Assembly: GCA_002269645.1 (NCBI GenBank)
Contig: NIVC01000006.1
Span: 310,001-374,000, forward strand
Source of the DNA: Macrostomum lignano
Taxonomy: Eukaryota
DNA length: 64,000 nucleotides
Reading direction: 5' to 3'
In this document: positions 1 through 41,667 of the stretch, in pieces
How the letters are laid out: each line of letters begins with the position of its first letter
Position numbering within the stretch: position 1 is the stretch's first letter
Notes under the pieces: generated by a model
Database searches by the model: none
What the model was told of the DNA's origin: nothing
What the model saw: only the letters and a program-made list of their open reading frames with translations
Made by a program: the position numbers and the translations under genes

Positions 1-19
1 TGCAACTTAATTTTCATTT

Positions 20-130
20 TGTATATGACTTTTCTTGCCTTTTTCTTTTTTTCTTTTTCCTTTCTCCTTTCCCTTCTCTTTTTTCTCTTTCCTTTTTTCT
101 TTTTCTCTTCCTTTCTTTTTTTCCATCAAT
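20..130 (+). repeat. Pyrimidine-rich (T/C) low-complexity tract
   Basis: Almost pure T/C runs. The short ORFs 14-229 are translations of this tract. Confidence 0.8.
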
Positions 131-539
131 TTTTTCATTTTTTGGATTTTCAATTTTGCAATTTTGAAACTGCAAAATTGCCAGCAGCCATTTCACCTGT
201 CCACTTTAGATAGGTCAGATAGGTATTAGGCATGTGCATGTATGGTAATTAGGTTCTCTATCTAGTATCTGGCCACTAGGATAAAAATTTTGTAGAGCAA
301 AGGCCTACCTCTGCTCTATATACTAATATAGGCCTAGCCTCACATTATTATCTACACACTTACATAAAGTTATGTCGTAGGGCTCTGTCTCTCTATAAAA
401 TCTCAATTGCTAACACCAAAGTTGTACCAGGCCTTTTGACTCCCTATGAGAATCCCACTAAATGCCACCAAAAGCTGTCCTAGGGCTCTTATTTATTCTT
501 TTGTTTAGCCTTACTTGCTGCCACCAAGCTGTTGCAGGG

Positions 540-1202
540 GTTATTCCTTCTTGTTAATATTGCTGGTTATTACTTGCCCTTTACTCGTAGTGCATGTACT
601 TCTATTGGTAGCATCTGTATTTCTATTGGTAGCGTATGTACTTTTATTGGTAGCGTCTGTACTTCTATTGTACTTTCTGGCCTGAGCGGTCCTTTTAGGC
701 ACTGTCTATCCTATTCCTATATTCGTCTAAAGATATTATTCTCTCAGTCCTGGGCGTTCCCGGGATCAGAGGGTCACAGCGCACTTCGCTGGGTATTCTG
801 CCCTGAGGCAGGTTTCTCAGACTCTAGGCCTGGATTTCTCTACCCTGTGGTAGAAATTCTGCCTTCTAAAGGCGGGTTACTAGACTCCTAAGTCTAGTGT
901 TTCTCGTCCTCTGAGAACGGACTGAACTCCTAATCTTGGGGCAACTCTTATGTCATTATCCACTACTCGAAATAAGTAACACAAGTGCTCACAAGCCCAA
1001 GGCTGATTTAAAGCTTGATCAATGGTACAAGAAAGGTTCACAAGGTTCACCAGATGATGCGAGGTATATTTATTTCTGCTCCTAGCTGACTCCTATTTAT
1101 AGTAAAATTTTCTTAGTATTTAAAACAAAGTATAGAATATTTGGAATATTTTGTATATAAGAAATATTTTCAATATTCGCAGAGTTAAACAACAGTAATA
1201 CA
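540..1202 (-). mobile_element. Possible decayed LTR retrotransposon fragment (candidate LTR ~951-1202 plus a stop-riddled internal region with 21-bp repeats)
   Basis: On the minus strand, TGTATTAC...TATAAATAGG...AAATAAA...ATAATGACA has a TG..CA frame with a TATA box and poly(A)-like signal in order. It is followed by a degenerate frame with four 21-bp KYRRYQ* repeats. No recognisable PBS. Confidence 0.25.
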
Positions 1203-3854
1203 TTTTTTAAATTCAACTTTTCTAAGAACTTTCCATAAAAACTGGAGGCCTATTATAGTTAGTTACTCAAGAAATGATAGTATAGTCCTATAAGCATTTG
1301 TTTTACATGTTAAATAGAACCATTGTGCTATTTATATTGTCACCATAGCAATAAATAGGCCTAGCAATTGGCCAACTGAAAAATTAAATAATAGACAGCT
1401 TGTTCTCTAAAATAGAGTTTTTTCTAATGCATATAACTTTGGCAATTGTTTTTTACTCATTACTGACATGACACTAAACTGACAAAATATGATAGGTAAT
1501 TAGCCTATTATTCTACTAGATGATTTTTTTAAACCAAAAGTTTAATTTTATTGGTGCTGGCAAAATTATAACTGAATAAGCACTGTCATTACATTACAAT
1601 TCTTGATATGTTGTCGTGGTTGCATTTTCAACCTTATGCGTATGGCTTGACCGGGCTTGAGTTGAGAATTTAGTTTCAGTTTCAGATAATCAGATAAAAA
1701 GTAAACAGTAAAGTAATCATTCCGACATTTGTATCTGAGAAAATGTAAGTAGAAAAAAGAAAAAATTAAAAAAAAATAACTTACTTTAATATACTACTTG
1801 CTATATAGTATACTGGATAGGCCTTTTAGATTGAGCCTTTTCGAATTCAGGGAATGTTTGCCGTAAATCGAATTGGATGCCTAACGCTAACGTTAACGTC
1901 GACTATATAGCTTTGTAGAAAAAGGTAAATTTAAAAAAATTACATATTACGTACGATGTAGAATAACACTACGCATGTTATCAGAAAATATATGCATATA
2001 GTTGGAATTAACTAGTTCAACATAACATTAAATTTCTTATATCAAAGAGAGATAATTTAATTTTAACTGGGTTTGAGTGCAGACTAGACCTGTATTGTAA
2101 TGCATTTTTAATTTAATAAATAATTAAATTTCAAACCAAAATCTTTCTCGTTCGGTATAATGAATTATCCATTTTTCAATTGTTAAAAAAGACCTGACCT
2201 GAATAGTGATAGGCATGATAAGTTTCAATTATAGTGGTCATTTGTGATACTGATAGCAACACGGGATTGACATAATCGATACGACGATATGTATAATGTA
2301 ATGTATGATTTACTGTGGTCGTGGATAAATACCTACACTCAGACTCAGCTCAGTCAGTCCAGTACCAGTCATGTGCATTGTGTAGCAGTGTAGGCAGTAG
2401 GCATATATATTATGGTGCTCTTACTCTCATAATTAAAATCTGCTCTGCTCCCTCATTTATATTTCTAATCTGCCTCGGGACTCTGTTTATAAGCCCTAGG
2501 CCCTAATATAAGTGTTTTAGGCTAGGGCCTAGGCCTAGTATTAAATTATTAATATCAATGATCGATTAGGCCTATGCTATGTTCTCTTAAAATGGTTAAT
2601 TATATGCTTTTATTAGGCCTAGTAAGTAATATTTATTATATATAGGCCTAATTGGTAGCAAAAATATTTTATTATTCTTGCTTGGTTATATATATTGTAT
2701 ATAAATTTGCTAGTAGCATATATTATATTTAGCCTAATATAAATAATAAGTAGTATTAGGCCTATAGACAATAGGGTGCCAGTCATTTCCTCTGCTGACA
2801 GTTCATCTGCTAAGTAGACAAAAGTTTTCTATTTCTAAAACTGTTTATCTACCAAGAAAGAGGAGTGGGGTAGAGAGTTGCCTAACCCACAACCTCTTCA
2901 TTAACATTGTTAAACTGCTACAGGGATGGTTGGTCTCTTCAAAATGAATCTCTTCAAAATATGTCATCTATGCTGACTATTGAGGCGGAAGGCCTTTTTG
3001 TTTCAATAGATAGAATGGCAGCAAAGATTTTGCATTGCATTGCGCATATATTTATACAAGTGAAAACAGCGCGAGATTATTGAGGGGCCAAGGAAGGTGC
3101 ACACATGTGGCATGGCGTGATTGGCTACGCCAACCCCCCTTGGCTTAGCGAGCCGGCTAGCACGGTGCGCCACCATCCCACCTCAGCTAGACAGAGGTTG
3201 GCGGGGGGTTTCTAGTGCGGCTGCACTGGTGCTGCCAGTCGCGTAGTCTAGCCGCCACACTATGCATTATATATAGTGCCTACTAGAGATTTTGTCAATT
3301 TTTAAATGTATGCCCTAGATACGGCTATAATAGGGGCCTATAGAGCAAATTCAAGTTTACTAGGGAGAAAAGTTGTTTAGAGAGTGGGACAATGGTATGT
3401 GACAGCTATAGATGATTTGAAAGCAAGTAAAAATTGTTTTTTTTTCATATTAGGATCATTTATCTACAAAGTGTGTTGCGTGATTATTTTTTGAATTAAA
3501 TTTAGTTTGTTTTATTTGCAATATTTTGCTATAACAAATATACCTTGAATTATAAATTGAACAAGCTGTTGAAACCCTAGATTTTGAACCTAGACAATTC
3601 CAATCCCCAGAATTTTTTTGCATATATTCTGAAATCTGAGGCCATACTCAAACAAGACTTGTTAATAGGCCTAGTTATAGTAGGATAGAGATAAACATAA
3701 AATCGAGTACATTTGTGTAAAATTAGGATTTGAGCAAAACATTTGATTTTGTAAGCTGGGGTGCTACGCAGAATGTCAGGCAGTGTCTGTATTTTGGCAA
3801 ACTCTGGCCTCTGTCTCTGACTGACCCTATATCCCTTAGATCCTTTGAAACATA

Positions 3855-4170
3855 TCTTCTCTTCTTTTTCCTCTCTTCTCTCTTCTCTCTTGTCTTTCTT
3901 TTCTTCTCTCTTGTCTTTCATCTTTCCTTCTTCTTTCTCTCCCTCCCCCCCTCTCTCTCTCTTTCTCTTTCACTCTCACTCTCTCTCTCTCTTATCTCTC
4001 CTTTCTCATCTCTTTTCTCCTCTCTATTTCTCTCCCCTCTCTATTCTCCTCTTTCCTCTCCTTTATCCTCACTTACTTCTCTCTCCCTTTGTCTATCCTC
4101 TCTCCTCTCATCTCTAATCTTTTCTCCCTTATCTCTCCTCGATCTGTACTCTCTACTCTCCCTTCTCTTG
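3855..4170 (+). repeat. (CT)n-rich polypyrimidine tract
   Basis: Degenerate CT/CTT microsatellite. Confidence 0.85.
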
Positions 4171-4229
4171 TCTATTCACTTTAACAGACTTAGACAAGAT
4201 ACAGCTACAACTTGCCTACTAGCACTTTC

Positions 4230-4700
4230 CAATGTTTGCAATTGATGGGCTTGAAGAACCCCCGAGGTAGCCTGCTGAGCTAGCAGATCTGCCAAGGCAT
4301 AGAGATTTAGGTTGCCATTTCTTGCTCTCCTGTTGAGGGCCATGTGCTATCCTTTGATGATTGTTAGTATGCTCTCTCTTGCAGTAGACTAAAAGCTCTT
4401 CGTGACTCCATATGCTACTAGAGAGCCACATTGTGTCTACGTAGCAGCAGAGTGCTACCAGTGCTTCAAATCAGTTTGCCTCTTTAGCGAGAGTGCTAAA
4501 TGCCACGTAGATATGTTTGGCAAGAAGGTGGATTAGCATTATCAACTTTCGGCAAAAGAGTCTTCTGCCTCTGTCTGCTGCTCAAGTATATATTGCAAAA
4601 CTTCTATGTAATCATACTTTGATTTTCCCGACATTAGTGCAAAGAACAGAGGCACTTGTTTTTGCTTTCTATCCTTCTGAAGAAGTCCATGAACTGAAAC
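4230..4700 (-). pseudogene. Decayed Mutator/MULE transposase C-terminal fragment
   Basis: Minus-strand frames read QVPLFFALMSGKSKYDYIEVLQYI, then after a frameshift FCRKLIMLIHLLAKHIYVAFSTL..YVDTMWLSS..VYCKREHTNNH. These match MULE motifs (PLvfALMsgK..DY; RklmaLpfLP..I..F..L; Y..tW; RTNN). Stops and frameshifts are present. Confidence 0.6.
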
Positions 4701-4771
4701 GAGAAAAATAGCTAGATGATAAATAATTACCACATTTTGTGAGTGAATGGGGGTGATAGTAAATTAACCTG

Positions 4772-6066
4772 ATTGAGTGGTTGACTGGGTGAAAGTGAAT
4801 TAAGTGGGTGAGTGGCTGGCTGAAAGTGAATTAAGTGGGTGAGTGACTGGGTGAAAGTAAATTAAGTGGGTAAACAACAACAACAACAAAATACGCTGTC
4901 ATGATGGTAAAAGTCAGCGTCACAGGGCGCGCTTCATGGCTTGGGCGCGAACAAAGGCCGCGCCACCGGCAGTGTCCGGGGCGCCGGCGTCAGCCAGCAG
5001 ACAGTCGACATAACGCCGAGTTCGCGCTTGACCTCGCCGGTAGGGTGCCTGCAGCGTGAGCAGCAGCACCTCCTGCACCGGCTGTGGGCAGTACGACTCG
5101 GCGCGGATGAGATGGCCTGCGAGCTGGAGTCGCCGACGGCGCAGTAGATCACTTGGACGTGGCAGGCCAGCGCGGCGATAGAGTGCCGCGTTGGTGACTC
5201 GCTCGACGCCGATGTTGAAGGCGGCGCGCAGCAGACCAGCGTGCGCCGCATCGACTTGCTGTTCGAGTGAGTCCGTCAGCGTCCAGGTCTCGGCGTTGTA
5301 CAGCAGGACGGTCTCGATTACCGCCTGGAACAGCGCCGCCCTCTGGCGGTCCGGTAGGGCCTCGGACTGCAGGACTGCCCTCACAGAACGAAAGGCAGCC
5401 CAGGCAAGCCCGCGGCGGCGTCGCAGGTCCTCGCGAGCGTCTGGAACCAGACCGCCGAGGTAGACGAACTGCTGACATCGCGGGAGTTCGGTCGCCTGCC
5501 CGTCAGCGCCTCGGCAAAAAAAAAAAAAAAAGTGGGTAAGTGGCTGGGTGAAAGTGAATTAAGTGGGTGAGTTGCTGGGTGAAAGTGAATTAAGTGGGTG
5601 AGTGGCTAGGTGAAAGTGAATTAAGTGGGTGAGTGGTTGGGTGAAAGTGAATTAAGTGGGTGAGTGGCTAGGTGAAAGTGAATTAAGTGGGTAAGTGGCT
5701 GGGTGAAAGTGAATTAAGTGGGTGAGTTGCTGGGTGAAAGTGAATTAAGTGGGTGAGTGGCTAGGTGAAAGTTAATTTAGTGGGTGAGTGGTTGGGTGAA
5801 AGGGAATTAAGTGGGTGAGTGCTAGGTGAAAGTGAATTAAGTGGGTGAGTGGTTGGGTGAAAGTGAATTAAGTAGGTGAGTGGCTAGGTGAAAGTGAATT
5901 AAGTGGGTGAGTGGCTGGGTAAAAGTGAATTAAGTGGGTGAATGGCTAGGTGAAAGTGAATTAAGTGGGTGAGTGACTGGGTGAAAGTAAATTAAGTGGG
6001 TGAGTGGCTGGGTGAAAGTGAATTAAGTGGGTGAGTGGCTGGGTGAAAGTTAATTAAGTGGGTGAG
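4772..6066 (+). repeat. 31-bp minisatellite (GTGAAAGTGAATTAAGTGGGTGAGTGGCTGG)n, interrupted by a LINE
   Basis: About 3 units at 4772-4873 and about 17 units at 5530-6066. Confidence 0.95.
4874..5529 (-). mobile_element. 5'-truncated RTE-like non-LTR retrotransposon, 3' end with (TTG)n tail
   Basis: ORF 5384-4920 (ETVLLYNAETWTLT..RRRRLQLAGHLIR) is homologous to the C-terminus of the RT element at 36.7-39 kb. It has a (TTG)n tail and a 10-bp TSD, AAGTGGGTAA, at 4864-4873 and 5530-5539. Confidence 0.9.
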
Positions 6067-8581
6067 TATGATCAATGTGTGGATGATGTATAGAGTGTGG
6101 ATGATAATGTGATCAATTTTACTTTGCTTACCTTTTCCTATTTATAGCGGGAGCAAATTAATCCAGTTAAATAAAGCATTGTCTTCTAGAATCTAACAAT
6201 ACTCCTTTTGGCTTATGCCTGAACCACATATTCGGTGCTGCCATTGACTGCAATCATCACATTGCAAAGCTTGCTGTTGAGAAAGCTCACACACTTTCTA
6301 CAAATGACACATGTCTTGCATCCAACAAATTTTGAATGAGAATAACTATTTGCCAATATTTTTATCTTTATCAAATTTTTAACAATTTCTGTTCCACTGG
6401 TTTTAGTTAAGCTTTCTTATTTTAGGTGTATATTGTAAAAGTTTGTTAAAATGATGAAAGACCCATATACATGCAGATGCAGTGCTTTATAACTATGTTA
6501 ATGGACAGAGTTGTCCAGACAGAGGCAGCTCATTAGTCCCCCAGCTTCCTAGTCCCCATCCCACTCCTCATCCCCACCCCATTTCCTAGCAGACAAACAG
6601 TTTTAGAAGGAAAAGGGCATTTTGTCTACTTAGCAGATGAACTGTTGGCAGACAAATGAACTAGAAACCTAGACAATAGATAGGCCTATTGTTTCATCTT
6701 ATTCTTAGACTATATCTATCTAAGCATTTTGGTTACTTTTATAAAGAATTTCTCTATATTTAGCCTAGGCACTAACTAAAATAAGATCAAAGAGAAAATT
6801 ATGGCTCTTAGGCATTATAGGACCCCTATACTGCTCAAAGTGATTCTGCTTAGACTATTTTTAGATGTTTCTCATTCTATAAACAATTATCAATTCTCCT
6901 AGATCTAGTGCTTAGGCTGAGGGTTTTTTATATTTTAGGCCTATCAAAATTAACCATGTCTTAAAATTCTACTTGGAACAATAGTTTTCTTACTAAACTA
7001 TGGTTTAAAGATCTTGCAAAGACCAAGCTTTTCAAGTTCCTAAAAGAATATAAAAAGAGCATTGTGGCAGTCTTTTATTTTTGCATTTTATATTTATTTT
7101 CTTTAATTTTTATAGTTTTTATTAAATGATAAATACTAAAAATAATAGATTCATAGAATGATTAATAATTTTCAATAGATAGATTGTCAATTGTCAACTA
7201 GTGAAACTATTAATCAAGTAGTAGTCTTACACATAGATCTTAAGCAACAATAATCAATAATTATAGTTGTAAATACCAATAAGCTAGTCATGGTTTTGGT
7301 AATATACTGCAATATGGTATTAGGCACCATTACTAAAAATCTTAACTTCTATTAATGTCAAAAGCATTAACATTAAAACAAAAAATGTTAGCTTATCAAA
7401 TCTTAGTTTCATTAAGTTAACTGAAAGTTAACTAATAATTATTAATAAATAATAGTCTATTATAGTTAACATAGAAAATATAGAAATCTTGCACTTTTTA
7501 TAAAACAGATTTTGTAATGCACCATGTATTTGCTTTTTTATATACTTTAGCAAAACACAAAAAGTCATTCAAGCAATTTACAAGCTAAAAAATACTAATT
7601 GTAAAAACTTGTATGCATCTAAATAGGCCTATACTAAATAATACTACTAAAAGTAAGCATACAATAAAGAAGTACCTTATTTATTTTAAACTTGAAAGCT
7701 ACTTAGTTAATAATAAGATTTAAATAGGAAGGTTGTTTTAGTACAATAGCATTAGCAGGTGAAGCAGAAAGTTACAAAAAATTAGGAAAGAAGTGAATCA
7801 AAGCAATCAATGGATGCTCACAATTGAGCAGTGTGAGCAATAAACTTCACAATTTTAATTATTTATTAAAGTTTATTAATAAAAAGTTGTTGCATTTGCA
7901 TGATCATCATCATAAACAAGGAGATTAATCAGGCACTTAGGTAAATTCAGATACATTCATAATGTTGTAACTTCTTGTTAGACATCTTTTTCTTTGTCTT
8001 TGGTCATTGACATTGTCATTAATGTTAACAATAAATTTGTTCTTAACTTACAAAATTATTAATACAATTTTGTTAATCTATTAGTGTAAAAAATCTTAAT
8101 GGTAGTCTGTTAATTCTAATAAAAATCTTAACACTTATTAAGGCTTATTAAAGGATTAACACTTATTAATAGACTGGTGCCCAACACTGCTGCAACAATT
8201 AAGTTGCATGACTGCTTGAGTTATGAGTCTGCTGTATCTGTCTATCTTCTACTCAACTAATAGTTAGACTCTGTGCTATAGATAAATCAATTAGCTACAT
8301 CATTGTACTCATATTTGAACTGCAAATTTAAAAGAAATCTTTAATTGTGCAAAAGTAAACAATCAAAAATTTGCACCCAGGATACCAGATGACATTGTGA
8401 TTCTGATTGCTTTTTAACCCAGTTACAAACCTATTGATTAAAAGTACATCAGCTCATTGAAATCTTGCATTGTCTGTAAGATAAGTATTGATATACTTGT
8501 TTACACTATATTAATGCTAAACATTTCTGAGAATATTAAAATCTGCTGAGTATCATTAATCAAGCTGCAATAATATTGGCA

Positions 8582-9181
8582 ATGTTACACCACTTGCTGT
8601 TTTCACTCTTGGCTGGCGCTGCTCTGATGCAGCTGGTGCTGGCGAATCCACTTGACTCGGCAAGCCTACCTGCTGGCTGTCCACCAGCTGGATCGCAGCC
8701 CACCATTATGCCTGGCACACTGCCAAACAGCACCGCCTATCTTGACTATGTCCTAGCCGAGACAGGTCAACGAGTGCAGTTTTATTACAATCAAAGTCTC
8801 GGCTTGGCCGCTCAGCTAGTTAGAAATTCAGCTAGCGAAACTGCCGGCCCTAATGAATACCAGCTTTATGACCATGCTCACGGTCAAGATGTGAGCCATA
8901 TGCTCAACTGGCCAACTGGCCGGTGCAATGTCAGCAATGCTACTGGCCTGAGTGACTCGCTGGCCGAAATTCGCAATACTGTCTTTTTGAATAGTAGCGC
9001 CTCCCCCTGTCTGCTGCTGCTGCTGGCTCCTGAACTGGCCGATGCTCATAACCACAGCGGCAAAGGTGGGCAGCCGCTGAGCACTCTGGCCTGGGAGAAC
9101 AACACCGCCTGTTTCAATGGGACCAAAGCGCATGATGGCCAAGTCTGGCGAGTCAAAATTCAGCTTTTCGGAGATGCTAAG
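8582..9181 (+). CDS. Exon 1 of a 632-aa type I membrane glycoprotein (signal peptide, many N-glycosylation sequons)
   Basis: ATG at 8582 followed by the hydrophobic signal peptide MLHHLLFSLLAGAALMQLVLA. Donor AAG|GTGAAG at 9182, phase 0. Confidence 0.8.
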
Positions 9182-9219
9182 GTGAAGCTTTTGTGTTATA
9201 TGATCATTTTGCTTGGTGT

Positions 9220-9690
9220 TTAAAAAAGGGCCGTTTTACCACCATTAAATAGGTGTTCTAAAAAGGGCCGTTTTATATCTACTGAATGTTTTTTAAAAAG
9301 GCGGTTTAACCCCCATCGAATATATGTTTTCAAAAAGGCCGTTTTATTCGTTATTAAATAAATGTTCTAAAAGTGCCGTTTGACCCATATTTTATAGGTA
9401 TTCTGAAACGGGCCGTTTTACAGATACTAAGTGAAGCTTTTGCGTTATATAATCATTTTGCTTGGTGTTTAAAAAAGGGCCGTTTTACCACCATTAAATA
9501 GGTTTTCTAAAAAACCGTTTTACATCTACTGAATATTTTTTTGAATAGGTGTTCTCAAAAGGGCCGTTTTGCTCTTATCAAATAGGAGTTCTAAAAAGAC
9601 GTTTTTACCGTATTGACTAGTAGGTGTTCTAAAAAGGGCCGTTTTGGCCTATCAAATAGGTGCTCTGAAAAAGGACCGTTTAAATCGCTA
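9220..9690 (+). repeat. Degenerate ~35-bp intronic repeat (AAAAGGGCCGTTTT...) with a ~250-bp higher-order duplication
   Basis: Recurring aaaagggccgtttta / ataggtgttct motifs. The sequence from 9174 is recopied from ~9423. Confidence 0.8.
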
Positions 9691-9752
9691 ACAGTTTCAG
9701 GTGTTTAAATTTCCAAGAGTGACCTAGGTGTTTTTTTGCACTCACCCCACAG

Positions 9753-10271
9753 GCCGATGTGTCGAGCGTTACCTTCGAACTGCTCTCGCCACCAACAAAG
9801 GAGAATGCCACGTCGTGGACTGTGTCGGAGCGTCGCACCTATCGATTCTTGGCCAGCCAGCGTGGCGCGTCTCCGCCAGGCGCGATTTCAGCTCTGGCCA
9901 ACCCGCCATCGTTTGTAGCCTGCGGCGCCGCCCGCGAACGGGACAGCCGGCCACCAGCTGTGCCAAATTCCATGCTTAAGAATCTTCGCCTAGCAACCAC
10001 CGATAAAAGTTCTGCTTTAGTTGTCGAGGATTCCGCCGCCAGCGCACTCGAATTGGCGCCTCAGATTGGCGCCAGGCTGCGCCAATTCTATGGCCCGAAC
10101 CGCTTGAGACTGGTTGCCGACCGAGCTCTGGCTGGGGTTGAATTTGTGCAAGATTTGGAGGCCGGAAATTGCAGTTTGGATTGGGTGGACAAGTCCGCAC
10201 TTGGGGGGCCGCTGCCATTCAATTTGAGCGCTGACGGCTGGCTGTGGACTGGGGAAAGCGCCGAGTTTCAG
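9753..10271 (+). CDS. Exon 2 of the type I membrane glycoprotein
   Basis: Acceptor tttttttgcactcaccccacAG| at 9752, in frame (ADVSSVTF...). Donor CAG|GTGATT at 10272, phase 0. Confidence 0.8.
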
Positions 10272-10288
10272 GTGATTTTGTTATTAAT

Positions 10289-10509
10289 GTGCGCACGGCT
10301 GTTCAGTCCAAGGACTGGGGAGGAGGGTCGCCACACACACCCTCAAATACCCCAGCTAATGCTGGCACCCATTTTACAGCTGGGTTAACTGAAGCAATGC
10401 AGAGTGTCTTCTTAAGTGTCTTGCTCAAGGACACAAATTGTTCCGAGTGGGTCGAGAATCGAACCCCCGACCTTCCAGTCGTGAGTCCGACCCTCTAACC
10501 ACTCGGCTA
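10289..10509 (-). mobile_element. tRNA-derived SINE with a CORE-like body
   Basis: The minus-strand head TAGCCGAGTGG..GGTTCGATTCT has pol III A and B boxes. The body GTGTCCTTGAGCAAGACACTTAA..CTGTAAAATGGG resembles the CORE-SINE domain. A second copy lies at 17733. Confidence 0.85.
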
Positions 10510-10669
10510 GAACCCGTTCTAACCTAACCTAAGGTATTAGATTAAATAAATTTAATATTTCAACTGCTACTATTGCAAACTTTTTCTCTGTGTATGTTCA
10601 ACTATTCAATTTGTCTTTGTTTATTCATCCGAAATTGAAAAAGTTCTAACAAATAAATCATTTTAACAG

Positions 10670-10954
10670 GGTCGCCAATGCTGCCGCCGTTACCTGCGAT
10701 TGGCTGCGAATTCCCTAATAGACTACGAAGTGTACTTTTGCGGAGGCACAAACTTTACCAATCTAGTAGGCTACAGTCGGCGGCGTCGTCATGTCAGCAA
10801 CCACTCGGCGGTTGAAGTGGCCAACTATCTGGTGACAGAGATTGATAGCGCCACCGAGCGGCCCATTGAATACGACTTGACCGCCTGCGCTTTGCTGCCT
10901 GGCGGAGGCGGCGCCAAACGGCTGTTGATGCGGGTTTTGGCCGCCTATCATGTG
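10670..10954 (+). CDS. Exon 3 of the type I membrane glycoprotein
   Basis: Acceptor ttttaacAG| at 10669, in frame (GRQCCRRYLRLAANSLIDYEV). Donor GTG|GTGTGT at 10955, phase 0. Confidence 0.75.
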
Positions 10955-11420
10955 GTGTGTGTCACTTCCGGTTTATGAGGCTTAAATAGTGTGTCACTTC
11001 CGGTTTATGAGGCTGCATTAGTGTGTCACCCGGTTTATGAGGCTGCATTAGTGTGTCACCCGGTTTATGAGTCTATTATTTTGTGACTTCCGGTTTATGA
11101 GGCTTAATTAGTGTCACTTCCGGTTTATGAGTCTTTATTAGTGTCACTTCCGGTTTATCAGTCTATTATTTTGTCACTTCCGGTTTTTGAGGTTTAATTA
11201 GTGTCACTTCCGATTTATGAGTCTTTATTAGTGCCATTTCCGTTTTATGAGGCTGCATTAGTGTGTCACCCGGTTTATGAGGCTGCATGAAACTGTCACT
11301 TCCAGTTTATGAGTCTTTATTATTTTGTCACTTCCGGTTATGAGGCCTAATTAGTGTCACTTCCGGTTTGACTATTAGTGTTACTTCCAGTTCATAAGAC
11401 TAATTAGTGTCACTTCCGGT
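10955..11420 (+). repeat. ~30-bp intronic minisatellite (GTGTCACTTCCGGTTTATGAG core)
   Basis: About 15 units fill intron 3, starting at the donor. Confidence 0.9.
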
Positions 11421-11445
11421 AAAACTGTCTTTCCTCTCACTGCAG

Positions 11446-11940
11446 GTCGCCAACAGCAAACCTGCCGATTTAACCGCTTTGGTTCGTTCTACCGTTACCA
11501 AGGCAACCGGGATCTCTCCCCTACGCTTAGCTCAGATATCCGTTGCTAAGGACGTCAACGCCAGCCTTAGCCAGGTTTGGCTGACCCTGCTGGGGCCGCC
11601 TACAAACGCTAGCAGTTCCGCCGGCGCCGCCAAGCCTTTGACGCTCGATGCCAGCTTGAAGAAACTGCTGCTTGCCGCCTCTGCCGGTGGATTGGATTTC
11701 AAGGTCGGCGACTGGCCCGTTGCCAGCCTGGAGCTGGGCAGCAACGCTACCGACACTGCTGGTCGCGGTGGCGGAGGAGGCGGCGGCGGCAGCACGGTGT
11801 ACATTCACGACGGTCACTCTGGCGGAGCCATGGCTGCCCTGGCCTTCTTCATGCTGCTGCTTGGCGGCGGTGGCGGCGTCCTTGGCGCCTGGTGCGTCTG
11901 GAAGCGGCGGCCAAACATGCCGTACTATGTGCAGGATTGA
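11446..11940 (+). CDS. Exon 4 (terminal) of the type I membrane glycoprotein: stalk, TM helix and short Tyr-containing tail
   Basis: Acceptor ctttcctctcactgcAG| at 11445. TM segment AMAALAFFMLLLGGGGGVLGAWCVW followed by KRRPNMPYYVQD*. Confidence 0.8.
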   Translation, partial: VANSKPADLTALVRSTVTKATGISPLRLAQISVAKDVNASLSQVWLTLLGPPTNASSSAGAAKPLTLDASLKKLLLAASAGGLDFKVGDWPVASLELGSNATDTAGRGGGGGGGGSTVYIHDGHSGGAMAALAFFMLLLGGGGGVLGAWCVWKRRPNMPYYVQD

Positions 11941-12040: not shown

Positions 12041-12157
12041 TGTCAGCGGGGCAGGAATTGACTGACTCGGTGATGTAGAGAATAATCTGGTGGGGAAGTT
12101 GCGTTTTAGTCTCTCAGTGAGTTTTGGGATTCCAGTGGGTTAATTTTTTATAAAGAT

Positions 12158-14020
12158 AGGATTTCAGAGAGTGTATGGTTTTAGGTAATGGGATTTCAGT
12201 GAGTGTATGGTTTTAGGTAATGGGATTTCAGAGAGTGTATGGTTTTAGGTAATGGGATTTCAGTGAGTGTATGGTTTTAGGTAATGGGATTTCAGAGAGT
12301 GTATGGTTTTAGGTAATGGGATTTCAGTGAGTTATGGTTTTAGGTAATGGGATTTCAGAGAGTGTATGGTTTTAGGTAATGGGATTTCAGTGAGTGTATG
12401 GTTTTAGGTAATGGGATTTCAGTGAGTGTATGGTTTTAGGTAATGGGATTTCAGAGAGTGTATGGTTTTAGGTAATGGGATTCAGTGAGTGTATGGTTTT
12501 AGGTAATGGGATTCAGTGAGTTATGGTTTTAGGTAATGGGATTTCAGTGAGTGTATGGTTTTAGGTAATGGGATTTCAGTGAGTGTATGGTTTTAGGTAA
12601 TGGGATTTCAGTGAGTGTATGGTTTTAGGTAATGGGATTTCAGTGAGTGTATGGTTTTAGGTAATGGGATTTCAGAGAGTGTATGGTTTTAGGTAATGGG
12701 ATTCAGTGAGTGTTATGGTTTTAGGTAATGGGATTTCAGAGAGTGTATGGTTTTAGGTAATGGGATTTCAGTGAGTGTATGGTTTTAGGTAATGGGATTT
12801 CAGTGAGTGTATGGTTTTAGGTAATGGGATTTCAGAGAGTGTATGGTTTTAGGTAATGGGATTCAGTGAGTGTATGGTTTTAGGTAATGGGATTCAGTGA
12901 GTGTATGGTTTTAGGTAATGGGATTTCAGTGAGTGTATGGTTTTAGGTAATGGGATTTCAGTGAGTGTATGGTTTTAGGTAATGGGATTTCAGTGAGTGT
13001 ATGGTTTTAGGTAATGGGATTTCAGTGAGTGTATGGTTTTAGGTAATGGGATTTCAGTGAGTGTATGGTTTTAGGTAATGGGATTTCAGTGAGTGTATGG
13101 TTTTAGGTAATGGGATTTCAGTGAGTGTATGGTTTTAGGTAATGGGATTTCAGTGAGTGTATGGTTTTAGGTAATGGGATTTCAGTGAGTGTATGGTTTT
13201 AGGTAATGGGATTTCAGTGAGTGTATGGTTTTAGGTAATGGGATTTCAGTGAGTGTATGGTTTTAGGTAATGGGATTTCAGTGAGTGTATGGTTTTAGGT
13301 AATGGGATTCAGTGAGTTTATGGTTTTAGGTAATGGGATTTCAGTGAGTGTATGGTTTTAGGTAATGGGATTTCAGTGAGTGTATGGTTTTAGGTAATGG
13401 GATTTCAGTGAGTGTATGGTTTTAGGTAATGGGATTTCAGTGAGTGTATGGTTTTAGGTAATGGGATTTCAGTGAGTGTATGGTTTTAGGTAATGGGATT
13501 TCAGTGAGTGTATGGTTTTAGGTAATGGGATTTCAGTGAGTGTATGGTTTTAGGTAATGGGATTTCAGTGAGTGTATGGTTTTAGGTAATGGGATTTCAG
13601 TGAGTGTATGGTTTTAGGTAATGGGATTTCAGTGAGTGTATGGTTTTAGGTAATGGGATTTCAGTGAGTGTATGGTTTTAGGTAATGGGATTTCAGTGAG
13701 TGTATGGTTTTAGGTAATGGGATTTCAGTGAGTGTATGGTTTTAGGTAATGGGATTTCAGTGAGTGTATGGTTTTAGGTAATGGGATTTCAGTGAGTGTA
13801 TGGTTTTAGGTAATGGGATTTCAGTGAGTGTATGGTTTTAGGTAATGGGATTTCAGTGAGTTATGGTTTTAGGTAATGGGATTTCAGTGAGTGTATGGTT
13901 TTAGGTAATGGGATTTCAGTGAGTGTATGGTTTTAGGTAATGGGATTTCAGTGAGTGTATGGTTTTAGGTAATGGGATTTCAGTGAGTTTTTGGTTTTAG
14001 GTAATGGAATTTCAGTGAGT
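12158..14020 (+). repeat. 32-bp minisatellite (GGGATTTCAGTGAGTGTATGGTTTTAGGTAAT)n, ~58 units
   Basis: Highly homogeneous tandem array. Confidence 0.97.
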
Positions 14021-14844
14021 TTAGTTCCGGTCTTATTTTTGAGATTCTTGAAATGAGGATCTGTCAACGAGAACTGTTTTAATCAAAATAATTAACAACT
14101 GTCGCACGCTAACGCCAACCCTTCGTATTATTCTTATTTATAATGCTTTTCATGTTTCACAGAAACTATATTTCTCATTTTCTGGTGAGCAGATTTTTTG
14201 AATTCCATGAAAAATATTATTGTACATCCAGCCAGCGCTTCTATTGCTGTATTGCATTGTAAATTATTCTGTCTAAACTGACAATAATCCCGACGCGTTT
14301 TAATCAAAAATCCCAAAATCCCATTTTTGTGTCTATTATTCGTTAAAGTACTCGTATTTTCTATTACTGACTATCCTTTACTACTTACTTCGATGCGATG
14401 CGAGTAGTATAGCCATTCAGTTTGGTGGCGTATTAATTCCTTTATTTTCACAGCTGATCGCTTAACCAGACTACTGACATTTCTTTTTTCTGCAGTAGTA
14501 TCAAAGGCGTTGGCGTCCATCTCGTCAGTCTATATTATTTTTCTTTTTTGTATTTAGTCTACCAAATCTATCAATATTTTGTGTTTATCCAGAGTAGGAA
14601 GGAGTGTTGGCTTTTTGTTTTAATGTTGTTTTTTTCCCCAAGTCATTTATTTATTTACTGTAAACTCGCACCCGCTTTAACAAAATAAAATAGGTCGTGT
14701 GTCTGCTGCACCAAAACGAATCCAGCAGTTCTACTTTAATCGGCTATTTACCAGCTCATGATTAGTTGAATCGTTGCTGTTTTCAATTTCAATTTTGTTT
14801 TTCCTTTATGTCCGTCTTGCATGGTTCACAATTTTGCTCACTGC

Positions 14845-16872: not shown

Positions 16873-17732
16873 CATCGGCATACAGTCATTCACTAATGCA
16901 GGCAAAAACAAACGAACCGACATGCAGACGCGAATACAGACTTAAATGCTATACATGGTACAGACAGACAGGCAGGCAACATCCGATGCAAAATATGATT
17001 CGAGCGCAAGAGACTGATTAACTACTCGAAGCAACAGAAGACTCGGAGGCTAAAGCAGCGCTCCTCTATGCGCAAAGCCGATCAATCAGGGAAACGCATG
17101 ATATGGAAAATTTCGATTGACAGAATTGCTAATAAAATGAAACTATGTATCTGTGAGTTTCTATAGCTTCTGACTATTAAACTTCTGCATGCTGTATGGT
17201 ACGAATCGCTTCAATGAACAGCAATGCAGTATATAACAGAGTCGAGAGAATCGGTTCACTCGGATTTAATTTAAGTCCTCACGGTTAGTTTGAACTCGGG
17301 CTCTGAAATAAAAGTCCGAGTCGTACTTTCTACAGATTATGCCTGGGTAAATAAACATTCATTTCCTATTTTTTAGCTATCTAAAAGATTCAGAAGAAGT
17401 TCTAGAAGAGAGAGGAACGAGGGGAGATTAGAGAGAGAGGAGAGGAGAGAAAGTGAGAGAAGAGACAAGCCTTGCGTGGGCCGGATTGATATATTGTGAA
17501 GTTTCAAAGGACCCAAAGTCTCAGTGAGGCATCAGTGTTCCTTCTGGAAGTTATGAGCATATTCGCTGCAGTCCGGGTCTTTCACAAGAAGATCCATGTA
17601 CAAAACGATTGCTATACTATAGAGACTTTTTCACTTCATTGTCAGTTGATAGCAAATTGGGAGAAGCTCCGTGTTGATGGAGCACCATGATGCTGTCAAC
17701 AGCTGTCGCTGTTGGTGCTTCATGATGGACTG

Positions 17733-20084: not shown

Positions 20085-20855
20085 AAATGTCAAGGCTACG
20101 GACAAGAAGTCAAGGCTACGGACAAGAATGTTTAGGACACGGACAAGAAGTCAAGGCTACGGACAAGAATGTTTAGGACACGGACAAGAAGTCAAGGCTA
20201 CGGACAAGAAGGCAATGGACAAGAATCTAAGCTGGCCATGGACATAAATTAAAGGCTACAGACGTAAAGTTTAGGCTACGGACAAGAATTTAAGGCTACA
20301 AACAAGAATTTAAGGCTACGGACAAGAATTTAAGGCTACAAACAAGAATTTATAAGGCAACAAACAAGAATTAAAGGCTACGGACAAGAATTTAAGGCTA
20401 TGAACAAGAATTTCAGGCTATGAACAAGAATTTAAGGCTATGAACAAGAATTTAAGGCTATGAACAAGAAGTTACGGCTACAGACAAGAGTTTAAGGCTA
20501 TTAACAAGAATTCAAGGCTATGAACAAGAATTTAAGGCTGTGAACAAGAAGTTAAGGCTACAGACAAGAATTTAAGGCTACAGACAAGAATTTAAGGCTA
20601 CAGACAAGAATTTAAGGCTACGGACAAGAATTTAAGGCTACGGACTATAATTTAAGGCTACGGACTATAATTTAAGGCTACGGACTATAATTTAAGGCTA
20701 CGGACTATAATTTAAGGCTACAGACAAGAATTTAAGGCTACAGACAAGAATTTAAGGCTACAGACAAGAATTTAAGGCTACGGACAAGAATTTAAGGCTA
20801 CAGACAAGAATTTAAGGCTACGGACAAGAATTTAAGGCGACGGACAAGAATTGAA
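20085..20855 (+). repeat. 20-bp intronic minisatellite (AAGGCTACGGACAAGAATTT)n
   Basis: Tandem array in syntrophin intron 2. Confidence 0.95.
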
Positions 20856-20919
20856 AGCGGCATGTCATGTTAGGAAACAAAAAAAAGCTCAGAAAAACAA
20901 AACGCAATTCAAACGCCAC

Positions 20920-22452
20920 CTTAAACAGCACGGGCGACCCGACCGCGGACTTCTTCGCCAGCGAATTGGACGTGGCCCGAAACCAGCACCGCTCGAGGCG
21001 GCTGACGTCTCCCACCGTCTCGGCGCTCATGTAGAACGTGTGCGCGCTGCCGCAGTGCAGGAAGAACGCATTCAATCGCTTGTCCAGCAGCTCCTCGTCG
21101 TCAAGGACTCTGATGACGCATTTGTAGACCTTCTCCTTGACCGAGGCGCTCTTCCAGTCGTCCAAGAAGATTGGCGGCACCTCAAACAGCATCAAGTCGT
21201 CGCCTCGCAGCGCCAGGAACACGTCCTGCCACAGCCGGCTGAGCTGCGGTGAGTCGTGCAGAGTCAGGCCCAGCCAGCCCATGTAGAGCAGCGGCTCCGT
21301 CTTCGGAGGAAAATCCGTCCCGATTCGCTCGTTGAATCTGGACACCTCCAACTCCATGAGCTGGCGGATGTTGCTGTGCACCACTGAGAACCATTTGTTG
21401 AACTCCTCGAAGCTGGAGAACAGCAGACAGCCGGTAGAGTGACCGTTCAAGCCGACGACTTCGAAGCTGCACCGCCGCAGCTGGTCGGAGTTCGGCTGAT
21501 AGCGCGTCACCCGGCCGTACTTCAGCGGCACCGTCATCACGTCGATCCAGGAGCGCTCCTGACAGGGCCGCTGCGGCTGCTGGCAGTGGTTCTGCTGCTG
21601 CCAGGCTTCAGTCAGCGAACAGTCTCCAACTTGCTGGCTTCGGCGATGGTTCCTGCCGCTGCCTCGGCTGCTGTTGGCATTGCGGTTGGCGAAGACTGTG
21701 CACCGATCGGTGTCGTTGGTCGGCGCCAGCAGTGAGGCCTTTGACGAAGTTGACGAGGAGCGGCTGTGCCGAGCGGCGGGCGGCGGCGGCAGCGGAGGCG
21801 GCGGTGGCGGCAGCTGAGGCGGTGGCTCCGTTGGCGTCTGGTGCTGCTGCTGCCAGAAGCCGGAGCCTGTGGACGAGTTGCTACGCACAGTCGAGAACGA
21901 CTCCGATGCGATCGGCGCCCGAGCTTCAGCGATCGTCGCGCCGCCAGCTGACGGAGTCCGCAGCACCCACGGGTTGGCCGGCGGAGGCGGCGCCAGGCCC
22001 GCCTCGAAGCCATCAAGATCGTCGTCAACGATTTCTCCGTTGCTCCGGTTGTTGTTGAAGGCGCCGCCAATGGAGAAGCCGCCGAGGTTGAGTCGGGCAG
22101 CCGCCGAGCTCGCGGCCGGCTCGTCCACTACCGGATCAAGGAGGAGATCCTCGCTGGACGAGCACCTTAACTGCGGCTGCGAAGGCTGCGGCGGCGGCGG
22201 CGGCGGCGGCGGCGAAGGCTGCGGCGGCGGCATCGGTGGCGGCGGCGGCGGCGGCGGCGGAAGCGACGGCGGACTTTCTGGCGCGGAGGTCACGGCTGCG
22301 TTCGACGAAGTTCTCCGCGACGAGTCCCGACGATTGGCCGACGTGGCGCCGCTGCCGGCAGCGCGACCAGCGCTGGCCGTGGAGTTCGAGGAGCCGGCCT
22401 GCTCGTGCAGCAGCTTGGCGGCCTCGCGGAAATGCTTCACCACCAGAGTGAC
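20920..22452 (-). CDS. SNTG1: Gamma-type syntrophin, middle exon (end of PDZ, long Pro/Ser/Gln linker, PH1b, PH2)
   Basis: Acceptor CAG|GTCACT gives VTLVVKHF. It encodes WIDVMTVPLKYGRVTRY..FEVVGLNG and LLYMGWL..WQDVFLALRGDDLMLFEVPP..LERCWFRAT. Donor AAG|GTGGCG at 20919, phase 0. Confidence 0.85.
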
Positions 22453-22507
22453 CTGCCGGGGCGGCGGTGGCGGGTGCCGCTGCAGCCTTCCCGACATCCT
22501 TAATGAA

Positions 22508-26559: not shown

Positions 26560-27106
26560 CTGCATTCTACTCTCCCTTTCCGTCTTCCTCTACTTCTCTC
26601 GCTCCTCTCTTTCCTCTCCCTCCTCTCCCTCCTCTCTCTCCTCTCTCTCCTCTCTCTCTCTCTTCTCTCTCCTCTCCCTCCTCTCCCTCCTCTCTCTCCT
26701 CTCTCTCCTCTCTCTCTCTCTTCTCTCTCCTCTCTCTCCTCTCCTTCCTCTCGCTCCTCTCGCTCCTCTCGCTCCTCTCGCTCCTCTCATCTCTCTCTCT
26801 CTCTTCTCTCTCCTCTCTCTCCTCTCCCTCCTATCCCTCCTCTCTCTCCTCTCTCTCCTCTCTCTCTCTTCTCTCTCCTCTCTCTCCTCTCCTTCCTCTC
26901 GCTCCTCTCGCTCCTCTCGCTCTTCTCGCTCCTCTCGCTCCTCTCGCTCCTCTCGCTCCTCTCTCTCCTCTCTCTCCTCTCCCTCCTCTCCCTCCTCTCT
27001 CTCCTCTCTCTCCTCTCCCTCCTCTCCCTCCTCTCCCTCCTCTCTCTCCTCTCGCTCCTCTCCTCTCTCTCTCTCTTCTCTCTCCTCTCTCTCTCTCCTC
27101 TCTCTC

Positions 27107-27178
<72 letters not shown>

Positions 27179-27344
27179 CCCTCTCTCTCTCCTCTCCTTC
27201 CTCTCGCTCCTCTCGCTCCTCTCGCTCCTCTCGCTCCTCTCGCTCCTCTCGCTCCTCTCGCTCCTCTCGCTCCTCTCCTCTCTCTCTCTCTTCTCTCTCC
27301 TCTCTCTCCTCTCCTTCCTCTCGCTCCTCTCGCTCCTCTCGCTC

Positions 27345-27376
<32 letters not shown>

Positions 27377-27461
27377 CTCTCTCCTTCTCTCCTCTCTCCT
27401 CTCGCTCCTCTCGCTCTTCTCGCTCCTCTCGCTCCTCTCACTCCTCTCTCTCCTCTCTCTC

Positions 27462-27503
<42 letters not shown>

Positions 27504-27835
27504 CCTCTCCTCTCCTCTCTCTCCTCTCTCTCCTCTCGCTCCTCTCACTCCTCTCTCTCTTCTCTCTCCTCTCTCTCCTCTCTCTCCTCTCGCTCTCGCT
27601 CCTCTCGTTCCTCTCGCTCCTCTCTCTGCTCTCTCTCCTCTCTCTCTTCTCTCTCCTCTCTCTCCTCTCGCTCTCGCTCCTCTCGCTCCTCTCGCTCCTC
27701 TCTCTGCTCTCACTCCTCTCTCTCTTCTCTCTCCTCTCTCTCCTCTCGCTCTCGCTCCTCTCGCTCCTCTCTCTGCTCTCACTCCTCTCCCTCCTCTCTC
27801 TCCTCTCTCTCCTCTCCTCTTTCTCCTCTCTCTCC
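26560..27835 (+). repeat. (CT)n / CTCCTCTC(T/G) polypyrimidine array
   Basis: About 1.3 kb that is nearly pure C/T. Confidence 0.95.
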
Positions 27836-29225: not shown

Positions 29226-29972
29226 CAGACAGGAATGGCAGCGAAGAGCTGATGCTGCCGTATTGAATTTCGCATTAAAGGCCTCTCAGAGCAGCTGATG
29301 AGGCGCACAGCTGGCAGAGAAGCTGCGCTGGCATCTTGCTGCACGCCCAGCCGGGAGAAAAGTAAATTAGCGAAGCGAATTGTGTCGCCCTCAGTGAATT
29401 AAAGATGCCCGTCTGCGTCAGTCACCGCAAGACTCTCCAGTCTGAGTGCGGCAGGCACACCGGTAGCAGCTGAGGCAGTCTGCACTTTTCCTATCAGCTC
29501 AGCTGTAGCGACTCCATTCCCTTCCCTGCTAAGCTCTGCCCCGCAGCTCAGATCTTCACATAAAATAAATTTTACGAGTATTTTTTTCATTTTTAATCGC
29601 CGCTTAGACCCTGGGCATTTTTCCGGTTTGAATGAACCGTATAGAGTTAACGTTTGAAATCAGCAAAGATATATCTGCAGGCTTCTCCTAAAACATTATC
29701 CTGTATATTTATTTAATATATGCGATTCATTTTAGCAAAAACCTTTATTCTAAAAGTCTCTAAAAACTGCACGTTTAAACATCCTTATATCGAGGGGGCT
29801 TGAAGTGGTCCTCTGGCTCACTTCTGCAGTGCTGCAGACTGCGTCTCTTCTGGTTTTTAACTGAAAAACCATTGTAAACATCAAGAACTTGATTGATTAG
29901 TACAGGACTGGTGGGGCAGTTTTTTCTGCAGATTTTAAAGAAAAAAATTAGTTGATAGCATTGTGCATTGCC

Positions 29973-30622
<650 letters not shown>

Positions 30623-35989: not shown

Positions 35990-36430
35990 CGAACGGGCAG
36001 GCGGCGTTGCTGCCTCGCTGCAAAGACCTAGGCGGTCTAAGCATCATGCCAAGCATCATGGACGACATGGCACGGCGCAGGGCGCTGTGCGGACTGTCTG
36101 TCCTGCAGTGCCCCGCGCTGCCGGATCGGCTGAGAGGGCGGCTGTTGCAGGTAGTCATATAGAAACCGTCCTCCGCTCCTTTACAATGCTGAAACGTGGA
36201 CACTGACCGGCCCGCAGGATCGCGGCAACTCGACGCCGCTCACGCTCGACTTCTGCGAGCCGCCTTCGGTGTTCACTACTCGCCAACCGCCACCACCAAC
36301 ACCTGCAAATGACGAGTGCTATACCGACGGGCCCAGCTCTCCCGACCCAGCGAGCTGCTGCGCATCCGGCGCCTTTATATAGCTAAACTGGCCGGCAACG
36401 TCGTCCGAGCAGAGCAGACGTACTGCCCTG
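35990..36430 (+). mobile_element. Old, diverged RTE-like LINE 3' fragment
   Basis: Frameshifted translation LPRC..LGGL..ARRRAL..VLQCPALPDRLRGRLLQVVI.TVLLYNAETWTLT..LDAAHARLLRAAFG..LYRRAQLSRPSELLR aligns with the C-terminus of the other two copies. Confidence 0.75.
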
Positions 36431-36665
36431 ACAGCAACCCAGCTTGGCTTGTCCAGGCTGCTGTAGTTTGTTGATGTGGTTGTTGTTGCTCGATCATAAT
36501 CCTAACTTTCTCTACTAATGCTACGAGGTACTACTAAATTGTTCTGTAGCTGCTGGAAGGCGTCTCTCTACATATTAGTTTGCGATTTACGTCAAGATAC
36601 GTGTACATATAAAGATAATTTTATAAAGTCATTATAAGCTATTTTAGGCCCTTTTTAAGCCACTC

Positions 36666-40882: not shown

Positions 40883-40934
40883 GTGCGGGACTGGGACTGG
40901 GACTGGGACTTGGACTGGAAATGGGACTGCGGAC

Positions 40935-41100
40935 TAAAGACAGGTAGCTGATCACAGGAAGGGTCAAAAGACACAGGACAGGGTCTAAAGACAGGTTGCT
41001 GATCACAGGAAGGGTCAAAAGACACAGGACAGGGTCTAAAGACAGGTTGCTGATCACAGGAAGGGTCAAAAGACACAGGACAGGGTCTAAAGACAGGTAG
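40935..41100 (+). repeat. 51-bp intronic repeat x~3.3
   Basis: Unit TAAAGACAGGT(A/T)GCTGATCACAGGAAGGGTCAAAAGACACAGGACAGGGTC. Confidence 0.93.
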
Positions 41101-41123
41101 CTAACCATTACCAAATCACTCAG

Positions 41124-41648: not shown

Positions 41649-41667
41649 GCAAGTGTGCTCGGTTTGG

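Follow-up and report, generated by a model that had tools for sequence, protein, structure and literature searches.

In the free-living flatworm Macrostomum lignano, the DNA directly upstream of a gene for a type-I membrane glycoprotein is free of CG dinucleotides (CpGs) over more than 2 kb. The zone lies in a 64,000-nucleotide stretch of contig NIVC01000006.1 (positions 310001-374000; hereafter the window), which holds 2285 CpGs. A first-pass annotation of the window had reported the zone, and its extent proved exact: the CGs at 6233 and 8617 flank the longest interval between neighbouring CpGs (2384 bp), which leaves 6235-8616 without any. The cause in which we have moderate confidence is dense germline 5-methylcytosine (5mC), which would be confined to AT-rich patches such as this one, followed by deamination. 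Expected CpG counts and observed/expected ratios (o/e) are given throughout, and the zone and its borders are as follows.

5530-6067, plus strand: minisatellite bounding the zone on the left, 17 copies of a 31-bp unit without CG.
6068-6234: left edge of the zone, with two CpGs at 6148 and 6233; the one at 6148 reads TG in a second genomic copy.
6235-8616: CpG-free zone, unique non-coding DNA of 29% G+C with 0 CpG against 50 expected.
6572-6659: the only dispersed-repeat piece of the zone, inverted with respect to 2783-2870 and 79% identical to it.
8582-11940, plus strand: type-I membrane-glycoprotein gene of four exons, with a signal-peptide-like N-terminus, many NxS/T sites, a C-terminal transmembrane segment and a short tail.
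8582-9181, plus strand: exon 1 of the glycoprotein gene, partly CpG-depleted (o/e ~0.5; later exons 0.66-1.15).

The zone is composed of 848 A, 840 T, 367 C and 327 G, from which 50.4 CpGs would be expected (Poisson P(0) = 1.3e-22); with the window's overall CpG o/e (0.67) as the basis, ~34 would still be expected (P(0) = 2.3e-15). Other combinations of the two bases are common, as had been claimed (GpC 84, o/e 1.67; CC 50; GG 43). Chance or plain AT-richness, which the low G+C content of the zone might seem to favour, is already refuted by these probabilities and by AT-rich segments of the same window that keep their full complement of CpG. The segment at 14021-14843 (34-35% G+C) has 27 CpGs against 24 expected and that at 16875-17288 (42% G+C) has 21 against 18, so the earlier argument that AT-richness is not a sufficient cause holds. 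The same state was also found in three further sequences, L002 and L005, both parts of contig NIVC01001740.1, and L003, a locus on contig NIVC01000029.1.

The length of a CpG gap is not by itself diagnostic in this genome, because most long gaps are tandem arrays of CG-less units. Such arrays underlie 8 of the 12 longest gaps in the window, and the four next-longest after the zone (12102-14028, 59600-61298, 54969-56600 and 29842-30599) are all of this kind. A CG-free tandem array, which does explain the gaps at 12102-14028, 54969-56600 and 59600-61298, was ruled out for the zone using Tandem Repeats Finder (TRF; score ≥30): within 6068-8700 it reported nothing beyond two trivial arrays (15 bp and 42 bp). 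A repeat search found no terminal-repeat structure in the zone, and no Rfam match was obtained anywhere in the 64-kb window. The longest open reading frame (ORF) in the zone is at most 53 codons, and the zone is non-coding. Except for one ~90-bp piece it is unique in ~135 kb of sampled genome, a sample far too small against moderate copy numbers.

The zone has 301 TpG and CpA dinucleotides against 246 expected, a surplus (~55) in keeping with the number of lost CpGs. Strand asymmetry is not significant (GC skew -0.058, AT skew +0.005). Together with the comparison of copies and a long interspersed nuclear element (LINE) fragment described below, these counts bear out the earlier proposal of a CpG-specific loss with TpG and CpA as its product. 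Fungal repeat-induced point mutation (RIP) and AT-rich isochores likewise combine AT-rich blocks, sharp borders and a C-to-T origin, but RIP hits duplicated DNA, prefers CpA and leaves an excess of TpA. A RIP-like process was ruled out for the zone, which is unique in the window, has a TpA o/e of 0.91 and a CpA o/e of 1.25, and lacks CpG only.

The zone ends 35 bp into the glycoprotein gene, whose map, like that of the other genes of the window, was built from stop-to-stop ORFs. No gene model exists for it on the window contig in GCA_002269645.1. The spliced model matches P0015, a predicted protein of 635 aa encoded on NIVC01001740.1, over its full length at 99% identity, and on this ground the gene and its ATG at 8582, as first annotated, are real; exon 1, which begins at this ATG, has 200 codons and a start resembling a signal peptide. 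A homologue search with exon 1 gave no match, nor did exact look-ups with its ORF or with that of a syntrophin-like gene. The gene was recovered solely by an exhaustive representative search with the spliced model. A weak relative of the glycoprotein (P0016) lies on a Logan run contig from sample ERR4677219. In the second copy the annotated start reads ATG GCA ATG (L005 6869-6877); the window reads TTG GCA ATG at 8576-8584, and its copy must therefore start at the second ATG.

The whole region is present a second time on contig NIVC01001740.1, either as a copy from genome duplication or as a haplotig. L005 is collinear with 1.7-14 kb of the window (96-100% identity) and L002 with 31.5-49.9 kb (93-97% identity). 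The L005 copy of the zone has 3 CpGs against 51.6 expected, and its final gap ends 41 bp past the annotated ATG; the exact zero in the window is thus the stochastic extreme of a near-zero state. A second CpG-free zone, the second-largest patch of the window, ends at the start codon of an unrelated gene and serves as an independent replicate. It and its neighbours are listed here.

39475-40535: sibling CpG-free zone, 1060 bp, 29.5% G+C, 0 CpG against 23 expected, ending at the TOM1-like ATG at 40529.
40529-43720, plus strand: TOM1-like VHS/GAT gene, with exon 1 (VHS) at 40529-40883.
36100-38950, plus strand: broken LINE copy forming the left neighbour of the sibling zone, CpG o/e 0.9-1.4.
4872-5529, minus strand: shorter LINE-type 3' fragment of the same family (C-terminal part of the reverse transcriptase), CpG o/e 1.1-1.2, lying between the target zone and an AT-rich block at 1-4781.

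The TOM1-like start at 40529 agrees with the N-terminus of the full-length protein from the second copy (P0002). The deposited model of the window gene, BOX15_Mlig004254g1 (296 aa), starts in exon 2 and omits the VHS exon, which the model of the second copy (416 aa) includes. A polypyrimidine-AG stretch 11 nt 5' of the ATG would be compatible with a splice acceptor. In L002 a 1473-bp gap (8531-10004; 34 CpGs expected) ends at the same TOM1-like ATG. When the two zones of the window and their counterparts in L002 and L005 are pooled, 3 CpGs are found against 159 expected.

We then compared the copies for CpG-specific mutation. Outside the patches no CpG hypermutability was seen: over ~10.5 kb of alignment, transition divergence was 0.029 in CpG context (1228 sites) and 0.027 for the remaining C/G positions (3942 sites). 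The LINE at 36100-38950 gave 0.026 in CpG context and 0.023 at other C/G sites, and the glycoprotein gene with the DNA downstream of it 5/702 and 21/3079 transitions, respectively. Age alone cannot make such a desert, because the process acting on CpG-replete DNA equilibrates at an o/e near 1.

Within the sibling zone, the copies differ at 71 positions. Placed at random, these differences would leave a CpG in one copy ~10.4 times, and this was seen once (P = 3.6e-4). CpG-making differences were at or above expectation in the controls (LINE, 50 against 40; intron, 17 against 11). It follows from the single gain that the purge of CpG is local and was still running after the duplication. This bears directly on whether the patches could be the oldest DNA of the locus, recording a past genome-wide methylation that has since stopped, with the CpG-replete DNA being younger. 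Such a relic would fit the present lack of CpG hypermutability in CpG-replete DNA, and the many small motif insertions in the patches could mark age. CpGs should then return, yet of the ~10 expected in the sibling zone since the duplication one is present. Likewise, the target zone should regain roughly 3 CpGs per 1% of lineage divergence, and its copies hold 0 and 3, none in common. A relic is therefore very unlikely.

The copies of the target zone differ by 48 substitutions in 2490 bp (1.9%). The number of CpG-making differences, 3 where 6 were expected, is roughly that of random change. In the window, TG or CA stands in place of each of the three CpGs found in the second copy (L005 4946, 5667 and 5822). 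Transitions were found at 4/12 CpG-context observations and 24/1477 other C/G sites (Fisher P = 4.5e-5, on counts that are small by necessity). New CpGs appear to arise in the target zone but not to persist.

A fragment of the same LINE family inside a CpG-poor patch of L003 provides DNA of CpG-rich origin. It has 12 CpGs (o/e 0.27), 49% G+C and 145 TG and CA dinucleotides, against 83 CpGs (o/e 1.12), 64% G+C and 85 TG and CA in the aligned window copy. Changes from C to T or G to A were found at 72/164 CpG-context sites (44%) and at 50/293 other C/G sites (P = 1.4e-9). We read this as a deamination signature on DNA with a known starting state, and a general drift from GC to AT in the same fragment would account for the AT-richness of the patch. 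A rough calculation with wide uncertainty puts CpG decay in the patches at no less than ~20-fold the per-site average, a strength that equals or exceeds that in mammals.

The same fragment speaks to another explanation, in which AT-rich, CpG-free source DNA (old non-autonomous DNA transposons or decayed CG-free minisatellites) gathers upstream of genes and no CpG was ever erased in place. There is material for such a process. About 30% of the bases of the window are minisatellite, with units of 9-72 bp that mostly lack CG, and short dispersed repeats occur in the patches (6572-6659 with 2783-2870; L002 20391-20733 with window 5-235 and 44221-44342). The second copy of the sibling zone also carries a ~640-bp miniature inverted-repeat transposable element (MITE), and the patches are marked by a palindromic motif described below. 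The target zone itself, however, has neither tandem nor terminal-repeat structure and is unique in the sampled DNA but for its one 90-bp piece, with the limit of sample size given above. Inherited composition also fails to explain why CpGs did not accumulate after the duplication and why a LINE fragment of CpG-rich origin lost them within a patch. We regard this explanation as improbable.

Divergence between the contigs shifts abruptly, from ~0.2-0.3% up to the satellite at 6067, to 0.6-1.9% over the zone and gene and 3-8% beyond, which suggests a mosaic of conversion tracts or haplotypes. The sibling zone diverges by 8.2% compared with ~4.7% in the LINE and the 3' flank, and the target zone by 1.9% compared with 0.6-1.2% in exons. 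A higher substitution rate at the C/G sites of the deserts was considered and rejected as largely an effect of composition, the same events falling on fewer C/G sites; only overall divergence is raised, ~1.7-fold. The patches also grow and shrink by insertion and deletion, as follows from the ~2.9 kb of CpG-poor DNA at L002 19250-22200 where the window has ~0.55 kb (49770-50350). The extra L002 DNA consists partly of the short dispersed repeats, L002 20391-20733 matching window 5-235 and 44221-44342.

These rates weigh on the possibility that the upstream DNA is regulatory and that CpGs in it are deleterious, for example as sites for a CpG- or methyl-binding factor, and are removed by purifying selection. 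Selection would account for the sharp ends of the zones at the start codons of two unrelated genes and a distant paralogue, for the missing CpG-creating differences since the duplication, and for a depletion that exceeds the outcome of vertebrate methylation. Since the zones diverge faster than their neighbours, there is no sign of constraint on them, and selection would have to be strong at each of ~50 potential sites while three CpGs are tolerated in the second copy. The L003 LINE fragment within a patch bears a transition signature typical of mutation, and patches (1-4781 and 50171-52614) also occur away from known start codons. Selection of this kind is thus unlikely.

To place the zones in their genomic setting, 179 non-repeat chunks of ~400 bp from the window, L002 and L003 were analysed. 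The CpG o/e follows a bimodal distribution: one peak lies below 0.2 and a second, broad one at 0.6-1.2, and a trough at 0.3-0.5 separates them. Of the chunks with less than 40% G+C, 29/80 fall below 0.2. The CpG-poor chunks of the window are at 137-594, 1069-1466, 2661-3058, 3457-4421, the target zone, 39475-40535, 50171-50984 and 51392-52614, and they fall into two patches besides the zones.

1-4781: AT-rich, mostly CpG-poor block with eight TAGGCCTA motifs; non-repeat chunks have a CpG o/e of 0.12-0.67 (~0.43 overall), with one at 1.28.
50171-52614: third CpG-poor AT-rich patch, o/e ~0-0.2, broken at 50985-51391 and starting ~0.5 kb upstream of a 282-aa gene on the minus strand.

The block at 1-4781 probably belongs to the same compartment as the target zone. 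The CpG-poor compartment upstream of the glycoprotein gene reaches at least to position 1 of the window, over more than 8 kb, broken by the LINE fragment and the satellite, which is longer than the first few kb of a transcription unit to which the first-pass annotation had assigned the erasure. The target zone may be promoter or intergenic DNA as well as the 5' intron or outron which that annotation inferred, and neither strand asymmetry nor an Rfam match speaks for the latter. As a separate observation, GpC is in excess in the patches: the o/e rises from the zone-wide 1.67 to 2.0 in 7001-8000, and averages 1.68 in CpG-poor and 1.42 in CpG-replete AT-rich chunks.

The link to gene 5' ends stood in part. 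It is supported by the glycoprotein gene, the TOM1-like gene, the second copies of both and a distant TOM1-like paralogue in L003 (42% identical), which has 18 CpGs against ~115 expected in the 4 kb before its ATG and an o/e of 0.8-1.2 thereafter. It is not general. Among 8 independent gene starts, a sample far too small and not random, three had a true desert before the ATG, one a partial desert, one a CG-free satellite upstream and three none. The satellite lies upstream of a PAN gene, a duplicate exon of which has none. Upstream DNA is CpG-replete (o/e 1.1-1.5) at an RMP gene and at a 1520-aa gene of L003 (1-3738, minus strand). The latter shows the opposite pattern, with an o/e of 0.2-0.75 in the body and 0.16 in the first 500 bp against 1.1-1.5 upstream (3739-5700). 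Taken as a whole, the first-pass interpretation is partly supported: the erasure is local, persistent and associated with the 5' side of a subset of genes.

The borders of the patches are not absolute. First exons adjoining patches are moderately depleted (CpG o/e 0.5-0.67), and TOM1-like exon 1 gives a hint of raised CpG transitions (0.069 vs 0.028). On this evidence the process seems to weaken over the border and not to halt at the ATG; the sharpness of the border would be partly due to the change from non-coding to coding composition.

The patches are further marked by the 8-bp palindrome TAGGCCTA, of which the window has 20 copies where 1.06 would be expected (~20-fold; 0/100 shuffles reached 20). 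Nineteen of these are located within CpG-poor AT-rich DNA or on its border, the exception being 33295 in an ordinary chunk. The motif also occurs in L002, L003 and L005, and the 17.7 kb of patch DNA in total has 35 copies, 5.4 times the expectation of an order-3 Markov model, with unrelated flanks. Its positions in the window are listed below.

6681-6688, 6936-6943 and 7624-7631: TAGGCCTA in the target zone.
329, 1356, 2530, 2567, 2614, 2643, 2757, 3666, 33295, 39450, 50202, 52114, 52606, 53196, 53202, 53295 and 53319: TAGGCCTA elsewhere.

The one-base variants TAGGGCCT and AGGCCCTA and the doubled form TAGGCCTAGGCCTA were also found, and some TAGGCCTA motifs are present in one copy and absent from the other as short insertions at TA. 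A literature search with TAGGCCTA returned only unrelated primer and oligonucleotide matches. The ~640-bp non-autonomous DNA element in the second copy of the sibling zone (L002 ~8612-9257) has ~40-bp terminal inverted repeats starting with GGG and, as read from the alignment, an apparent TA flank; the site is empty in the window near 39780-39800. Footprint-like insertions of 7-10 bp lie beside the element, of which no further copies were found in the window or the other loci sampled. The 8-mer TACATGTA, which we take to be a Tc1-type excision footprint, is among the most over-represented. TAGGCCTA is probably the TA+GG+CC+TA excision footprint of a TA-duplicating cut-and-paste element with GG...CC ends, a lead that comes from one element, and the patches may have been long-standing accessible targets for such elements.

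We propose that AT-rich patches of 1-4 kb form a compartment of these loci where CpG would be continuously and specifically turned into TpG and CpA. Dense germline 5mC, limited to the patches, would deaminate and so erase their CpGs, and the adjacent exons, LINE copies and satellites would be spared. The enzymes that the first-pass annotation had required of the lineage are present: DNMT1 and DNMT3 are retained in M. lignano, and its overall 5mC is low (PMC11292947, PMC9246332, both citing Wasik et al. 2015 for the enzymes; PMC10658182 also for low global 5mC). The genomic pattern of methylation in free-living flatworms is stated to be unknown (PMC9246332), and our literature search found no paper describing it for M. 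lignano.

Several points weigh against this proposal. Methylation as the cause, and the germline as its site of action, are inferred from mutational footprints only. The excess of TpG and CpA is weakly specific (among AT-rich chunks, a mean o/e of 1.14 in the CpG-poor ones and 1.04 in the CpG-replete ones; P = 0.046), and the high GpC has no explanation in methylation. Vertebrate bulk DNA has a CpG o/e of ~0.2 and is thus less completely depleted than the patches; so complete a loss would call for very rapid decay or for a further cause. Sparing LINEs and exons while hitting unique AT-rich upstream DNA would be neither a gene-body nor a transposon-directed pattern of animals. Persistence was tested on the sibling zone; power in the target zone is low because its copies are just 1.9% apart. 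Age and location are also partly confounded, because the L003 LINE fragment is older as well (70% identity).

A different cause could be some other CpG-specific mutation in open, AT-rich germline chromatin, for instance through error-prone repair of CpG sites or through repeated modification and removal. It would suit a depletion beyond known methylation equilibria and the raised overall divergence of the patches. The patches are also hot spots of small insertions, with one transposon insertion between the copies, which suggests accessible, often broken DNA. No such process is known to operate in animals, the TpG and CpA that replace CpG are what deamination would yield, and the lineage has DNMT1 and DNMT3 (PMC9246332). 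We give this alternative little weight.

Methylation-driven loss as proposed here can be set beside known systems. It shares with vertebrate 5mC depletion and its promoter CpG islands the CpG-specific loss to TpG and CpA, the sharp borders and the DNMT1 and DNMT3 pair. The geometry, however, is inverted: DNA 5' of start codons is depleted and exons, LINE copies and satellites have an o/e near 1. The patches are moreover a minority of the locus and more completely depleted (o/e 0-0.07 vs ~0.2). Methylated CpG-poor promoters of tissue-specific vertebrate genes resemble the zone in being AT-rich, CpG-poor DNA 5' of the start codon of a gene that is not obviously housekeeping. Those promoters share a depleted background, whereas in the flatworm it is the upstream DNA that stands out from an undepleted background. 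Invertebrate mosaic (gene-body) methylation has been inferred from bimodal CpG o/e, and such bimodality is seen here within one genome; the L003 gene at 1-3738, with its depleted body and CpG-replete upstream DNA, fits that pattern. The flatworm zone differs in lying upstream of the ATG and outside the coding part, with an o/e of 0.5-1.15 in the exons that follow. The unannotated glycoprotein gene is presumably weakly expressed and not housekeeping, unlike the targets of gene-body methylation, the mosaic form of which is reviewed in PMC11292947 and PMC9246332.

The remaining features of the window are the following.

49665, minus strand: start of the coding sequence of the 282-aa gene.
From ~56888, plus strand: PAN/lectin-like gene.
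Minus strand: syntrophin-like gene.
Minus strand: fibrinogen-related exon.

The reverse-transcriptase frame of the LINE at 36100-38950 is interrupted by two in-frame stops, and no frameshift was seen between the pieces. An ORF at 20818-22497 on the minus strand contains a 201-residue stretch 100% identical to BOX15_Mlig029059g1 of M. lignano. Two PAN-like first exons, 6.5 kb apart at 56870-57271 and 63367-63768, have 134-residue ORFs that differ by one residue and are preceded by an identical 28 bp, which would indicate a recent local duplication. Examples of the minisatellites are at 12159-14020, 45028-46412, 54995-56562, 59693-61264 and 26596-27835; many are strongly strand-skewed and several are intronic.

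Depletion of CpG by methylation is already known; its placement here, in AT-rich upstream DNA with exons and retroelements spared, would be an unusual variant. It is possible, though we suggest it only tentatively, that M. lignano has an 'inverse CpG island' genome, in which germline methylation targets AT-rich domains directly 5' of some of the genes rather than gene bodies or retroelements, with the domains also acting as landing pads for TA-targeting cut-and-paste transposons and CpG purged from them at a rate at least that of mammals. If so, the low global 5mC of this flatworm would reflect a methylated compartment that has been nearly emptied of CpG. The footprints predict methylation in AT-rich patches abutting some start codons and none in exons, LINE copies or satellites, a placement unlike that in vertebrates and unlike the standard one in invertebrates, which can be checked in base-resolution methylomes. 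The promoter fragments used in M. lignano transgenes derive from such DNA, and it would be useful to know that it may form a separate, fast-evolving and insertion-prone compartment.

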